From positions 124,001 to 188,000 of IMG/VR virus record IMGVR_UViG_3300028864_000014: DNA of 64,000 nucleotides; one strand, written 5' to 3'. Below are positions 7,147 to 15,935 of the stretch, in pieces. The notes below the pieces were generated by a model. It was not told the origin of the DNA. It searched no databases and was given only the letters and a program-made list of their open reading frames with translations. The position numbers and the translations under genes are program-made. Position 1 is the first letter of the stretch. Each line of letters starts with the position of its first letter.

Positions 7147-7665
7147 ATGACTGGAAAATTAGATAATTATTTAGTTGAAAAATATCCTAAAATTTTCATA
7201 AATCGTTATGGTGATATGAAATCTACTGCAATGTGTTGGGGATTTGAACATGGAGATGGTTGGTTTTGGATATTAGATCAACTATGTTATTCTATTCAAA
7301 GTTATATTGATATGAGTAATGAATATTTATCTGATGATAAGAAAATTCCTCAATTAGTTGCATCACAAATAAAAGAGAAATTTGGAACTCTTAATTTTTA
7401 TTATGATGGAGGAAATTCTGAAATTGATGGAATGGTTAGATTTGCTGAAAATATGTCAGCAGGAGTATGTGAGTTTTGTGGATCAACTGAAAACATTGGA
7501 GGAACAAAAGGATGGATTTCAATTATATGCAAGTCATGTTATGATAATTCATCAGATAATGTCAAAAATAGAGTATGGACAGAACGCAAAAATAATCTTT
7601 CATATAGTAACACAATGAAAGAAGTTAGAAAAATAAAACTTGATAAATTAAATAGAGATTTATAA
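7147..7665 (+). CDS. conserved-looking phage protein with Cys pairs and RKxKL tag
   Basis: GFEHGDGWF, QIKEKFGTLNFY, CEFC...CKSC; ends VRKIKLDKLNRDL. Confidence 0.7.
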   Translation: MTGKLDNYLVEKYPKIFINRYGDMKSTAMCWGFEHGDGWFWILDQLCYSIQSYIDMSNEYLSDDKKIPQLVASQIKEKFGTLNFYYDGGNSEIDGMVRFAENMSAGVCEFCGSTENIGGTKGWISIICKSCYDNSSDNVKNRVWTERKNNLSYSNTMKEVRKIKLDKLNRDL

Positions 7666-7666
7666 T

Positions 7667-7701
7667 AAAAAATAGTTAGATTTATATCTAACTATTTTTT
7701 T
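7667..7701 (+). terminator. intrinsic terminator
   Basis: aaaaatagttaga/tctaactattttt stem plus T-run. Confidence 0.75.
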
Positions 7702-7703
7702 AT

Positions 7704-8671
7704 ATGAAATATTTTACTTATATTTGTATTTCAAGAATTGAAAATATGGAATACAAAGATTTAATAAAAACGATTAAAAAATACGAAGGTTCATATATAG
7801 AGTTTATAATGGATTTAAGTCATAATAATAAATGGTTTTTGATGACGATCAAAGAAGATTTATTTAAAATGAATTATAAAATAATAATTCTGAATAATAT
7901 ATTTAGTTTTTATGAATTACAAAAAATTACAAAAAATATAGAAGAAAAAACAATAATTTTTGTAAATAATAAAATAGATAATAATAATTTTAAAGATCCG
8001 TATAGATATTTCAATGAAAATTGTACTATAATATTTTTATGTGAATATTATAAGCATAAAAATAATAACTCAGTAAATAATATACTTAGTGACTTTAATA
8101 ACATAAGATTAACATATTCATCAGGTTTAATAGTTTCTGTAATATCAGATAAAGTAAAAATCGAAAAATCAAGAATTGAAAGAATTGATTGTGATAGTTA
8201 TTTCTATACATATACTGCAGTAAGAAAATTAAAATTAAAAATAATAAATTATAAAATTGAAAATAATATAATATGAAAGATGTAAAAGAATTTGTAGAAC
8301 AATTAGTCAATATTGATTTAATTGAAAATGAAGATTGTTATGGTCATTATCCATTTCAATTATTTGTAGAAACAAGTGATGGTAAATTCGAAATGAATTC
8401 ATTGGCATTGGGTGGTGATGTTGAATCATGCTACAGTAGAGTAAAGAATTATTTTAAAGATGGCGCAAAGAGAATGTTCATGTCATTAGATTTTCCTGGC
8501 TCTCAAGATATTGAAAATGATTTTGTGTGTATTTACTCAATTGTGGATGGTGATTTTGATGTATATGCAATTCCATATGACACAGAAACTGGAGAAGTAT
8601 ATGAAGAGATTCATAAAAGTGTTTTATTAGATAAAATTCTTGATGATTTCAAAACTCTTTGCTTGAAATAA
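7704..8671 (+). other. two hypothetical ORFs (7704-8276 with RKxKL tag; 8273-8671 acidic)
   Basis: ORF track; ATGA-type overlap. Confidence 0.7.
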
Positions 8672-11187: not shown

Positions 11188-13252
11188 AAGTAAAAAAATG
11201 TGATTTTACGCTCAAAGTATCAAATACAGTAGAGTGGTTGAAAGATATGGATGAATGGACATGTCCATTAAGTATATCAGTTTGGATAAAAAAAGATGAA
11301 TGTATGTATGATCAACATTTTACTGAGGATTTTCCAATATTAGATGATTTGGAAATTGAAGAACCTGGTGAAGGCGATATGTACTACTACGGAGAAACCC
11401 CAGTCACACCAGAAGAAATGGTAATAAAATTACAGAAATTAGGATTTGAAGCAGAAATATTCACAAAACCAAATTTTGATTAAATTTATCATGGAAGAAG
11501 AAATCGTAAAATCATATAATTTTATGTGATTTTACCGAACTATATTATGATATCAGAATAAATTAAAAATTAAAAATATGAGTAAATATAAAATAACACA
11601 AGAATTATTAGTTAAAGTAAAATTACTTTATCCTGATTGTGATGTTTTTGAATCTAAAATAAAAAAAGACTTTATTGGAGTACGTAGGTTTCTTGGTAAA
11701 TCAAAATACTACAGAGATGATAAAACAACATTTGAAGTTGATATGACATCAGTTGATTATTTTCATGTAGCAGAAGCTATTTTAGACACTAATAACTTAT
11801 AATATGATAACTAAAACTTTGAACAATAAAACCTTTATATTCAAAGACTATGAAGAGCCAGACTATAAAGAAATTTCATATGAAGGCAAAACATACAAAT
11901 ATAAACAAGGTGAAAACCAATACGGAAATAAAACATATTTTTACTATGGCACTACTCATAATAAATATAATAAATATTTATTTTTTGGACCTATAATAGT
12001 AGAAACTGAGCCAAAATTATTATTTGAAATATATGGTCATATTGAATCTGAAATATTCACTAAGAATGAAGTACGAAATAACATTAAAGAAAAAGTAGAT
12101 TTGATAAATAGAAGAGCAGAAATAAAAAGAGGAGAAATAATTTGAGATGAATAAAAATTATGATGATGGAAATTGGAATTGGAAATATGAATGCATATAT
12201 GCAAATGAGACAAATGATCCAAATGATTATTATTATGTAATAGAATTTGATTCTTCAAATGATTATGATTTCAACCCAGTTGATATTACATGTTTTTATA
12301 AACCTCTTGAAAATGTATTAGAAATACACAAAGAAAATACATTAATTAATTTTTTTGTTGAAAATTTTTCTGATATTAAGAATATACTAAATCCAATGAT
12401 TAAATCATATAACGCAATCACATATCCAATATACGTAAGCAAAAAATCAATAAGAAGAGATAAATTAAATAATCTATCATGACATCAAAAGATATATGCA
12501 ATAGAATATTATTCATTGATAATAGAATCTTCGGATTGAAAATACTTATGAATCGTTATTCACTTAGTAATGATGAATATTTGGAATCATATAATAGCAA
12601 AGTTGAATTTGAAGAGGAAATAAAAAAACTTGAAAAAAACTTAAAATTAAATAGAATAAGAAAAGAAAAATTAAAAGAATTAAATGACATCAAAAGATAT
12701 TTACAATAGAATAATTAAAATAGAAACTTCATTATTCGGACTTAAAATTATTGTCAATAGCAATTATGGAATTAATTGTAATCATATAGAAGCTATTAAT
12801 GAAATTATTGAGTTAAAAAGAGAATTGTATATATTGAAAGATAAATTAATTAATATTAATATAAGAAAAGAAAAATTAAAAAATCTCAATAACATATGAT
12901 TGATTATAGCAAAGATATAATATTATCAAGAGAAATGAAAACTGTACATGAACAAATGTCTGACAAATTATACGAAAATGTGAGATTGCTATGTAACGTA
13001 GAAACAAGAAATAAACAAATATACGTCTCATTATTTAATTACAATTATTTTAATTATGAGTATCCTTATTTTGATGATCATGACGTAATATATAAAGTAG
13101 ATAATGAAGATTTCTATAAAAACTTTAAAAAAATAAGAAAAATCAAAGGAGATTATAATAATTCATACAAACCAATAAAATTTAAAACTGAACTTGAATG
13201 CCTAATATATTTGAAATCAATAGGTATTGATGAAGTTAGCCTAAATAATTAA
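11184..13252 (+). other. run of 7 hypothetical ORFs; 12479-12709 and 12684-12899 are tandem paralogues
   Basis: The paralogues both start MTSKDI.NRI...GLKI and end IRKEKLK.L. Confidence 0.75.
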
Positions 13253-13269
13253 AAATAATTACATGAAAG

Positions 13270-13301
13270 TTTGGTAAATTGAAAACTTTTTTGTACTTTT
13301 G
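13270..13301 (+). promoter_or_regulatory. Bacteroidota sigma-A promoter of the tRNA-Leu operon
   Basis: TTTG (13270-13273), 20 nt, TACTTTTG (13294-13301). Confidence 0.8.
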
Positions 13302-13355
13302 TACTACATAATAAAAATAGAAAAAAATCACATTTTTAAGATAATATATACTGAT

Positions 13356-13448
13356 ATGAAAAACTACAATAACATAATGAACTTGCTACTCTCAAACCTA
13401 TTATTACAGAATAATCGGACTGAGAATATTATGTCATATCTATTGTAA
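13356..13448 (+). CDS. Leu-rich attenuator leader peptide, MKNYNNIMNLLLSNLLLQNNRTENIMSYLL (30 aa, below the ORF-track cutoff)
   Basis: 8 of 30 residues are Leu, in two LLL runs and one LL; codons TTG CTA CTC / CTA TTA TTA / CTA TTG. Confidence 0.8.
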   Translation: MKNYNNIMNLLLSNLLLQNNRTENIMSYLL

Positions 13449-13508
13449 CAAATAATATAAGCATATTTAAAAACCTCAGTCATTTATTTGACTGAGGTTT
13501 TTTCTTTT
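13383..13508 (+). promoter_or_regulatory. ribosome-mediated transcription attenuator (1:2 protector, 2:3 antiterminator, 3:4 terminator)
   Basis: 1:2 = 13390-13425 (tctca..cc.attatt-acag-aataat.gg..tgaga); 2:3 = gactgag 13418-13424 with ctcagtc 13475-13481; 3:4 = aaaaacctcagtca 13469-13482 with tgactgaggttttt 13489-13502, then a U-run. Confidence 0.82.
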
Positions 13509-13518
13509 ATAATAAAAT

Positions 13519-13603
13519 GCTCTGATGGTGGAATTGGCGATACACGAAGGTCTTAAAAACCTTTACATTAGAAACGATGCGGGTCCGAATCCCGCTCAGA
13601 GTA
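13519..13603 (+). tRNA. tRNA-Leu(TAA) #1
   Basis: Acceptor GCTCTGA/TCAGAGT, anticodon arm AAGGT-CTTAAAA-ACCTT, long variable arm, T-arm GCGGG-TCCGAAT-CCCGC, A73. Confidence 0.92.
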
Positions 13604-13608
13604 CAAAT

Positions 13609-13695
13609 GTTCCTGTGATGAAATTGGTAGCACATGCAAGACTTAAAATTTTGTGGATAGTAATATCCGTGTCGGTTCAAGTCCGACCAGGAATA
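13609..13695 (+). tRNA. tRNA-Leu(TAA) #2
   Basis: Acceptor GTTCCTG/CAGGAAT, CAAGA-CTTAAAA-TTTTG, long variable arm, T-loop TTCAAGT, A73. Confidence 0.92.
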
Positions 13696-13705
13696 CAAAA
13701 AAAAT

Positions 13706-13791
13706 GCTGATGTGGCGAAATGAATACGCGGCAGTCTAAGAAACTGTTTCTGAACAAAGTAAGAATGTGGGTTCAAGTCCCACCATCAGTA
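13706..13791 (+). tRNA. tRNA-Leu(AAG)
   Basis: Acceptor GCTGATG/CATCAGT, GCAGT-CTAAGAA-ACTGT, long variable arm, T-loop TTCAAGT, A73. Confidence 0.88.
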
Positions 13792-13798
13792 CAATAAT

Positions 13799-13872
13799 GA
13801 CTGAGTGATGTAATTGGTAACCATGTCATCCTCAAAAGGTGAATTTTGTGGGTCCGAATCCCATCTCAGTTA
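13799..13872 (+). tRNA. tRNA with Leu anticodon CAA and a short variable loop
   Basis: Acceptor GACTGAG/CTCAGTT, TCATC-CTCAAAA-GGTGA, 5-nt variable loop, T-loop TCCGAAT, A73. Confidence 0.85.
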
Positions 13873-13880
13873 CAAAAAAT

Positions 13881-13970
13881 GTTCCAGTGGCGAAACTTGG
13901 TTGAGACGCGTTAGATTTAGGATCTAATACAGTTAATGACACACTGCGGGTCCAAATCCCGCCTGGAATA
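13881..13970 (+). tRNA. tRNA-Leu(TAG)
   Basis: Acceptor GTTCCAG/CTGGAAT, TTAGA-TTTAGGA-TCTAA, long variable arm, T-loop TCCAAAT, A73. Confidence 0.92.
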
Positions 13971-13971
13971 C

Positions 13972-14014
13972 AAAGTGTGAGTCAATTTTATTATAAAAAT
14001 TGACTCACACTTTT
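13972..14014. terminator. bidirectional intrinsic terminator between the tRNA operon and the convergent late-type operon
   Basis: 18-bp arms aaagtgtgagtcaatttt/aaaattgactcacacttt. Confidence 0.88.
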
Positions 14015-14021
14015 AAATATA

Positions 14022-14450
14022 TCATAGATTAAATTTCTTTGTAGTATCTACTATATTTTTTCTATATAGATAATCTTTCATTTCTTCGTCTGTTAGGTGT
14101 CTAATATATCCTGTTGGAACCCATGCAAAGAAATCGTGTTCATCTATATCAGATAGTGAATTTCTTAATGCATACCCATAATACCATTCATAATTAACTA
14201 GCACATATTCTTTACTATAATCATTATCAGTAAATTTGTCAGTCGTCTTTTTTTCATTATGTCTATTATATAATACTGAGTCTAATTTTTCAATATATTC
14301 TTTATCTAATTTAACTATATCACCATCATAAACACCAGTATGAAATTCTGGCCTTTTTATATAAAAAATCTCACCATATGTTTCATCTTTTGTTGGTTCT
14401 CTTTGCCATATATCTTTTGATTCATTTATGAATTGGTCATATTTTTTCAT
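14022..14450 (-). CDS. hypothetical protein, CTS-like leader plus KFNL tag
   Basis: MKKYDQFINE|SK...TTKKFNL*. Confidence 0.8.
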   Translation of the reverse strand: MKKYDQFINESKDIWQREPTKDETYGEIFYIKRPEFHTGVYDGDIVKLDKEYIEKLDSVLYNRHNEKKTTDKFTDNDYSKEYVLVNYEWYYGYALRNSLSDIDEHDFFAWVPTGYIRHLTDEEMKDYLYRKNIVDTTKKFNL

Positions 14451-14878: not shown

Positions 14879-15321
14879 AGATTAAATTTTTCTGAATTTT
14901 TTATTGATAGATATTTTTCATATTGTTCTGTATATTCAGACATTATCATATCCATGTAAACTTTGGTATTTTTAATATAGAATAAAAAATCCTCGTCATT
15001 ATCGTCTTTTAAGTTCCAATTTGACCCTGCTTCTATTAATATTTTAATGATATTAATATTCTTTCTCATAGCAGCATAATGTAATGCTGTTCTTTCATAG
15101 GCATCTTGATAGTTAACATCAGCACCTTTTTCAATTAAATATTTAACTATATCTATTCTATTATTATCTGCAGCTAATATTAATGATGAATATCCATATT
15201 TATTTATATTATTCACATCAACTTTTTTATTTTCTATGAATTCTATTACTACATTCAAATCTCCTTCACGACAAGCATCAGATAATTTTTCATATGATTC
15301 AAACATTTTTATATATTTCAC
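14875..15321 (-). CDS. ankyrin-repeat protein, CTS-like leader plus KFNL tag
   Basis: GYSSLILAA...IVKYLIEKGADVN, ERTALHYAA...IIKILIEAGSN. Confidence 0.9.
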   Translation of the reverse strand: MKYIKMFESYEKLSDACREGDLNVVIEFIENKKVDVNNINKYGYSSLILAADNNRIDIVKYLIEKGADVNYQDAYERTALHYAAMRKNINIIKILIEAGSNWNLKDDNDEDFLFYIKNTKVYMDMIMSEYTEQYEKYLSIKNSEKFNL

Positions 15322-15935
15322 ACCGTAGTTTTATTTTTTAATTTTGAAATTGCTTTTTTCATTATATCAATTGTCAAATTACTAATTTCCATTATATTAA
15401 AATCTCCTTCAATTTCTGTGTTATGAGGATGTTCAATTTTAATTGACACTTTACTTAATGGTTTGCTTCCAATTACTTTTTGAGAATCATCTACTAATAT
15501 ATCAGCATACTTCCATTTATCCATTGATGAGTTAGCAAAAATAATATCATCATATTTGAATCCATAATGATCTAACCATTTTTTAGCTGATTCTTTTGAT
15601 TCTTCTGTAGGTTGTTTAGTTACAATATTTAAAGTAAATCCATAAGTTTTTACGAAGTCGTATATATTATTAATTGTATCAACTGCTCCTTTATATGGTT
15701 GTGCAATATCAAAAACTTCGGATTTTTTATTATCAAACCAAGTTTTAGATGATTCACCATTATAGTCCATTGTTTCATACCAATGCCAATTTTGATCCTG
15801 AGTTATTTCTTTATCTGGAAAGTATTTTTTATATAAGGTGTTGTATGCATTGACAAAATCACATATTGTACCATCAATATCAATTCCAATTGTTATTTTA
15901 TTTGTAAATGTTTCAAACATTTTTAGATGTTTCAT
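15318..15935 (-). CDS. 5'(3')-deoxyribonucleotidase (NT5C-like HAD) with CTS-like leader
   Basis: IGIDIDGTICD, PYKGAVD, IVTKQP, ILVDDS. Confidence 0.8.
   Translation of the reverse strand: MKHLKMFETFTNKITIGIDIDGTICDFVNAYNTLYKKYFPDKEITQDQNWHWYETMDYNGESSKTWFDNKKSEVFDIAQPYKGAVDTINNIYDFVKTYGFTLNIVTKQPTEESKESAKKWLDHYGFKYDDIIFANSSMDKWKYADILVDDSQKVIGSKPLSKVSIKIEHPHNTEIEGDFNIMEISNLTIDIMKKAISKLKNKTTV

Follow-up and report, generated by a model that had tools for sequence, protein, structure and literature searches.

We found that a giant phage of Bacteroidota carries a small leucine-rich reading frame and a predicted switchable terminator in front of five tRNA genes with Leu anticodons. Related megaphages, including the human-gut Prevotella phage Lak-A1, repeat this design, with the small frame enriched in the amino acids of the tRNAs behind it. 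Based on computational evidence alone, we consider it likely that the locus is a ribosome-mediated (leader-peptide) transcription attenuator whose regulated product is the tRNA array itself, which suggests that these viruses make tRNAs only when decoding runs short.

Anatomy of the leader and the tRNA array

The window analyzed here is a stretch of 64,000 nucleotides of viral DNA with 24% GC. It carries phage-type genes, namely an NAD ligase, a ClpP-like head protease, phage ATPases and an HNH endonuclease. The initial annotation, made from the sequence alone, described a promoter, a Leu-rich leader ORF, three mutually exclusive helices, five tRNA-Leu genes and an end terminator, and every one of these elements was confirmed. 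The features are as follows.

13270-13301 (+): promoter, with -33 TTTG (13270-13273), a 20-nt spacer and -7 TACTTTTG (13294-13301); it includes the extended element TTTGGTAAATTGAAAACTT (13270-13288)
13312-13338 (+): 5'-UTR A/U hairpin (TAAAAAT / ATTTTTA), the counterpart of a stronger GAAAAAAA..TTTTTTTC hairpin followed by ATATATA in the other families
13356-13448 (+): leader ORF of 30 codons, eight of them Leu, with the core NLLLSNLLLQ and the stop codon TAA at 13446-13448
13383-13406 (+): control codons TTG CTA CTC (13383-13391) and CTA TTA TTA (13398-13406), overlapping region 1 (13387-13405), the 5' arm of the 1:2 hairpin
13410-13428 (+): region 2, core GACTGAG at 13418-13424, which pairs either with region 1 or with region 3
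13469-13482 (+): region 3, the 5' arm of the terminator, core CTCAGTC at 13475-13481
13489-13508 (+): region 4, the 3' arm of the terminator (13489-13502), followed by the T tract
13519-13604 (+): tRNA-Leu (UAA), copy 1, 51.6 bits
13609-13696 (+): tRNA-Leu (UAA), copy 2, 49.1 bits
13706-13792 (+): tRNA-Leu (AAG), 52.6 bits
13799-13873 (+): tRNA with anticodon CAA, 75 nt, 51.4 bits, with a 5-nt variable region and no long variable arm; called Leu from the anticodon only
13881-13971 (+): tRNA-Leu (UAG), 47.4 bits
13972-14013 (no strand given): end terminator of the array, an 18-bp perfect inverted repeat usable in both directions against the convergent minus-strand genes

The tRNA genes and their anticodons were identified with ARAGORN, and their Rfam tRNA scores of 47-53 bits lie well above the threshold of 29. 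The 14-bp terminator stem with its T tract lies 16 nt before the first tRNA and is one of three terminator-like sites in 4 kb, where shuffled sequences gave 0.5. No other TAnnTTTG motif was found between 13302 and 14100. The initial annotation called the promoter a consensus host promoter, which is only partly right: the -33/-7 motifs fit the Bacteroidota type, but the extended 17-nt element is absent from representatives of 185,579 bacterial species and looks specific to this phage lineage. We also noticed that region 4 is identical to the 5' acceptor strand of the fourth tRNA (TGACTGAG; 10-nt complement at 13796-13805). However, this identity is absent from the closest relative and from the other families, so it is probably due to chance.

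Next, we examined the composition of the leader ORF. Taken alone, its Leu richness is only mildly unusual for this genome, because 6.75% of 252 comparable sORFs reach it, although only 2 of 252 have two LLL runs. The codon choice is more unusual: CTA appears three times and CTC once, although they make up only 7% and 0.4%, respectively, of the Leu codons in the long ORFs of the phage. With these rare codons, each anticodon class of the array has a codon to report on, and all eight Leu codons are readable by the anticodons of the array. The window leader is also rich in Asn with no tRNA-Asn behind it, which is partly explained by a shared MK(N/T)xNxN start module and by the 24% GC content.

Recurrence of the module in related megaphages

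To investigate whether the leader is conserved, we searched IMG/VR with the two flanking proteins. These matched a 235-kb viral contig at 100% and a second phage, here called L011, at 81-83% identity. The array of L011 has been rearranged: four tRNAs were found, a LAGLIDADG-type endonuclease gene is inserted, and two extra ORFs lie upstream. Nevertheless, the block from promoter to terminator is 249/252 identical (98.8%), whereas the upstream gene is 85% identical and the tRNAs 71-77%. The one change inside the ORF turns the Ser codon between the Leu runs into a ninth Leu and keeps the helix pair as G-U. A gapped DNA pattern of the GACTGAG/CTCAGTC segments found only the window phage, one relative and two chance hits in IMG/VR.

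BLAST analysis of the locus against phage records hit only the promoter and 5'-UTR, in the huge phages LR756501-3. Downstream of those hits the layout is the same, with a short ORF, a strong terminator and a tRNA array. We then used the shared 17-nt promoter element to scan IMG/VR and metagenomes. Where the element is followed within about 300 nt by a strong terminator (14 of the 50 unique promoter segments), a short ORF and tRNAs follow too. Otherwise it precedes GOLLD RNA or protein-coding ORFs, or nothing was identified downstream. BLAST analysis of the leader preceding the Lys/Phe/Trp array found nothing.

The window's ClpP-like protein places this phage in the clade of these huge phages and the Prevotella Lak phages. 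A piecewise scan of Lak-A1 found two units of a differently spelled version of the module, with terminator loops of 12 and 18 nt that were recognized by reading the sequence. One has a leader core with G, M, H, P, C and R before His, Pro, Arg, Arg, Gly, Cys and Met tRNAs, and the other is a broad leader before an 18-tRNA region. Together they cover 25 of the 32 tRNAs of this phage.

Leader composition tracks the array in these phages. Leader cores with Q, D and P precede Pro/Asp/Gln arrays, in two diverged versions; S, K, F, W and H precede Lys/Phe/Trp/Ser/His; N, Y and D precede Asn/Tyr/Asp; and L and N precede Leu/Leu/Asn. The leader in LR756501 contains RRGTGTGTGT, and its Gly and Thr tRNAs were predicted from the leader when only Arg tRNAs were in hand. 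Extending the sequence showed Arg x3, Thr x3, Val x2, Ala x2, Gly x3, Arg and Pro, which matches the T, P, A, V, R and G of the leader. A second array, in LR756502 (Asn, Leu, Val, Ile, Thr and others), has a leader rich in N, L, T, V and I.

We then permuted the arrays among 14 leaders from IMG/VR and metagenome contigs, LR756501, LR756502 and Lak-A1. This gave z = 5.8 for amino acids and 6.1 for codons under standard wobble rules, and 0 of 500,000 permutations reached the observed value. Given that homologous leaders are not independent samples, we repeated the test with one representative of each of eight unrelated leaders, and obtained exact p-values of 12/40320 (amino acids) and 9/40320 (codons). 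Two of the 14 leaders showed little or no enrichment, and one sORF downstream of the GOLLD match was left out of the statistics as ambiguous.

Alternative pairing and the proposed attenuation mechanism

In the window, the 2:3 pairing of GACTGAG with CTCAGTC has an energy of -12.1 kcal/mol, against -5.1 +/- 1.6 for shuffled sequences (p = 0.002). In all 13 loci examined, a 7-10-bp segment in the last third of the ORF pairs with the 5' arm of the terminator at -10.3 to -15 kcal/mol, with p <= 0.008 against shuffles in 10 of 13. The terminator stems differ between families and region 2 changes with them, for example TTGACTGA with TCAGTCAA against TTGACTGG with CCAGTCAA. Each leader pairs best or nearly best with its own terminator rather than with foreign ones (0 of 200,000 permutations), although the families are too diverged to align for a per-column covariation count without fitting them to the structure. 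The few strong cross-pairings involve families that share a CTCAGT-type stem, which suggests common descent.

The geometry is consistent with attenuation. The cognate codons lie upstream of region 2, and in the window the last control codon ends 11 nt before it. The spacer from terminator to first tRNA is 15-32 nt in seven loci, which is too short for a promoter. The 1:2 helix of the window (13387-13405/13410-13428) is 79% complementary and forms at -9.8 kcal/mol in the fold model. However, it is not significantly better than shuffles (p = 0.1), nor is its counterpart in most families, so that a general 1:2 helix is not supported. In three of the other loci (L108, L151 and L052) the stop codon is 0-5 nt from region 2, and in other families neither feature is clear.

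Next, we folded the window leader with a 28-nt ribosome mask. With the A site on any of the six internal Leu codons, the 7-bp 2:3 helix formed before region 4 was made. With no ribosome, or with a ribosome at the stop codon, region 2 sat in the 1:2 hairpin, region 3 was free and the terminator formed. The remaining two Leu codons lie after region 2 and would not act as sensors. The terminator (-19.8 kcal/mol) is more stable than the short antiterminator (-12.6 kcal/mol as a hairpin), so the choice can only be kinetic.

Based on these results, we propose the following model, in which translation of the leader and its coupling to RNA polymerase are inferred without expression data. A ribosome translates the leader while RNA polymerase moves on. 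If Leu codons are decoded fast, the ribosome leaves region 1, and region 2 is taken up by region 1 or, in other families, is covered by the ribosome at the stop codon; the 3:4 terminator then forms and transcription ends before the first tRNA. If charged tRNA-Leu is short, the ribosome stalls on one of the six internal Leu codons and covers region 1, region 2 pairs with region 3, and the five tRNA genes are transcribed. The new tRNAs relieve the stall, giving a negative-feedback loop that supplies tRNA on demand. In relatives with mixed arrays, the leader carries codons for each amino acid in the array and acts as an OR gate. Thus, the core interpretation of the initial annotation, a trp/leu-type attenuator whose output is the tRNA-Leu cassette, is supported by the comparative tests it had proposed. 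Its suggestion that a host anticodon nuclease may be the trigger remains a hypothesis, as do codon-usage mismatch with the host and shut-off of host tRNA synthesis.

We also considered other explanations. The same hardware might report general translation or amino-acid status, with tRNA as a by-product or part of a broader stress program. A stalled ribosome probably cannot tell a missing tRNA from an uncharged one, and in three loci (L151, L110 and L052) a 65-169-codon ORF sits between the terminator and the tRNAs, so the output is not always tRNA alone. However, a general stress sensor gives no reason for the match between leaders and the specific amino acids and codons of their arrays, and more tRNA does not cure amino-acid starvation, so this coupling would not be selected. 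This explanation therefore seems unlikely. It seems still less likely that the terminator is simply leaky or is overcome by a phage or host protein, with the small ORF being a by-product or encoding a micropeptide. The promoter is shared with GOLLD RNA and some protein genes and may belong to a temporal class, and the conserved 5'-UTR hairpin could bind a factor. Nevertheless, the peptides share no sequence across families beyond the first few residues while their composition follows the tRNAs, and region 2 lies inside the ORF and covaries with the terminator. A protein antiterminator needs neither feature, although an extra protein layer is not excluded. Chance in an AT-rich genome, with the hairpin merely ending the upstream operon or a small RNA and the tRNAs made by read-through, could account for the Leu richness and the 1:2 duplex of the window alone, but is already disfavored by the recurrence in at least eight unrelated leaders with matching arrays, the GC-rich 7-mer pairing and the conservation of the leader. 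Direct sensing of uncharged tRNA, as in a T-box, would suit an output belonging to the decoding apparatus, but it is very improbable because no T-box or other riboswitch family matched at E <= 1 and leaders with codons for up to six amino acids do not fit a single specifier codon.

More tentatively, megaphages of the Lak/Mahaphage clade, from environmental jumbo phages to human-gut Prevotella phages, may run most of their tRNA arrays under multi-amino-acid attenuators of this type. The phage would then switch on exactly the tRNAs that have run short, including after attack by host tRNA-cleaving defenses, and switch them off once supply is restored. This possibility is not excluded by our data, but it is about as likely to be wrong as right, if not more so.

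Comparison with known regulatory systems

Why large phages carry dozens of tRNAs, and how they use them, is an open question. The module described here would show that the phage measures decoding of particular codons with a ribosome and answers by making the matching tRNAs, which extends a textbook mechanism to stable RNA as a new class of output. Each leader peptide would give a readable label for which tRNAs are co-regulated, and the promoter, about 90 nt of ORF and the terminator offer a simple, portable part that could report charged-tRNA levels for almost any amino acid in Bacteroidota. The phage tRNA clusters of T4, T5 and mycobacteriophages may keep translation going late in infection or after host tRNA cleavage. 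A full-text literature search, which did not cover subscription-only papers, found no report of demand-sensing control in front of such arrays, nor of leader peptides or attenuation in front of tRNA genes, in phages or elsewhere.

The logic of the locus is that of the enterobacterial leader-peptide attenuators of amino-acid biosynthesis operons (trpL, leuL, hisL and pheL, and thrL and ilvL with mixed control codons). Those attenuators likewise appear to have a promoter-proximal short ORF with runs of control codons, an intrinsic terminator and an alternative 2:3 antiterminator overlapping the 5' arm of the terminator, with the decision set by where the ribosome sits. The mixed leaders (Thr+Ile; Ile+Val+Leu) appear to be a precedent for multi-amino-acid sensing. 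Here, however, the output is tRNA genes rather than enzymes, the leaders carry up to six amino-acid types matched to a tRNA array, and the element is phage-borne and uses a Bacteroidota-type promoter. There is no sequence similarity to those attenuators, since a covariance-model search (cmscan) of 12800-14400 against Rfam at E <= 1, including Leu_leader, listed only tRNA and sub-threshold chance hits. In addition, in several families the stop codon abuts region 2 and no 1:2 helix is evident. T-box riboswitches share the aim of raising decoding capacity when a particular tRNA is not adequately charged, but they bind the tRNA directly and need no ribosome. The pheM leader of pheST (phenylalanyl-tRNA synthetase) in E. 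coli similarly appears to use cognate codons to control a component of the decoding apparatus for the same amino acid, giving feedback on aminoacyl-tRNA supply, but it regulates a synthetase rather than tRNAs, is chromosomal and senses a single amino acid.

The tRNA genes and the surroundings of the array

Among the individual tRNA genes of the array and the genes inserted in or lying beside it, the following features of the window are considered here:

13706-13792, tRNA-Leu with an A34 anticodon (AAG)
13799-13873, tRNA with a CAA anticodon
14875-15321 (minus strand), ankyrin-repeat protein
15318-15935 (minus strand), NT5C-type 5'-nucleotidase

The CAA-anticodon tRNA is only 75 nt long with a 5-nt variable region, unlike the other four tRNAs, which are 86-91 nt and have a long arm. 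A 74-nt counterpart (8581-8654) is kept in L011, the relative of the window phage, while the huge phage LR756502 has a normal 84-nt Leu(CAA). The AAG tRNA, which LR756502 and Prevotella phage Lak-A1 also have, would need inosine formation, or it reads CTT only. In L011, a 415-codon ORF with LAGLIDADG and HTH domains (7332-8579) is inserted inside the tRNA array, so that it separates the CAA tRNA from the rest. The genes for the ankyrin-repeat protein and the 5'-nucleotidase lie just downstream of the window array and are convergent with it.

We also found that Lak-A1 carries two CUA-anticodon tRNAs and one UUA-anticodon tRNA, that is, readers of stop codons, in the segments L163 (21693-22672, minus strand) and L164 (7225-7297, minus strand) of its genome. 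No strong terminator was found upstream of them.

The leader block and the genes behind it

Comparison of the window (13266-13518) with L011 (6852-7105) showed that the leader block is far more conserved (98.8%) than the tRNAs it probably controls (71-77%). This suggests either that selection on the block is very strong, or that the cassette was exchanged recently while the tRNAs turned over. A conserved 5'-UTR hairpin (GAAAAAAA-loop-TTTTTTTC), followed by ATATATA, sits between the start of the transcript and the leader ATG in the 5'-UTRs of the related loci L023, L028, L052, L151 and L020, and it is weaker in the window (13312-13338).

In L151 (2329-2790), L110 and L052, three of the related loci, a Lys/Glu-rich ORF of 65-169 codons with no Pfam match lies between the attenuator terminator and the first tRNA, so that it is probably co-regulated with the tRNAs. 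In addition, L151 has a second attenuator further down, before Tyr/Asp/Asn tRNAs.

We also noted that GACTGAG occurs three times, at window positions 13418-13424, 13490-13496 and 13799-13805, the third as the 5' acceptor strand of tRNA 4, and that AATGACTGAG is a 10/10 complement of the terminator 5' arm. However, this was not seen in the relative or in other families, and it is therefore probably due to chance or a relic.

Distribution of the extended promoter element

The same extended promoter precedes GOLLD RNA in two further contigs, L025 (1084-1491) and L063 (4455-4867, minus strand), with scores of 324 and 284 bits, respectively. L063 also carries a tmRNA and about 25 tRNAs right after GOLLD, so that in these phages it looks like a stable-RNA promoter. 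The element TTTGGTARATTGAAAACT (window 13270-13288) plus TAnnTTT occurs in many viral and metagenome contigs, but in none of the 185,579 representative bacterial genomes. It looks like a phage-lineage signature on top of the host-type -33/-7 motifs.
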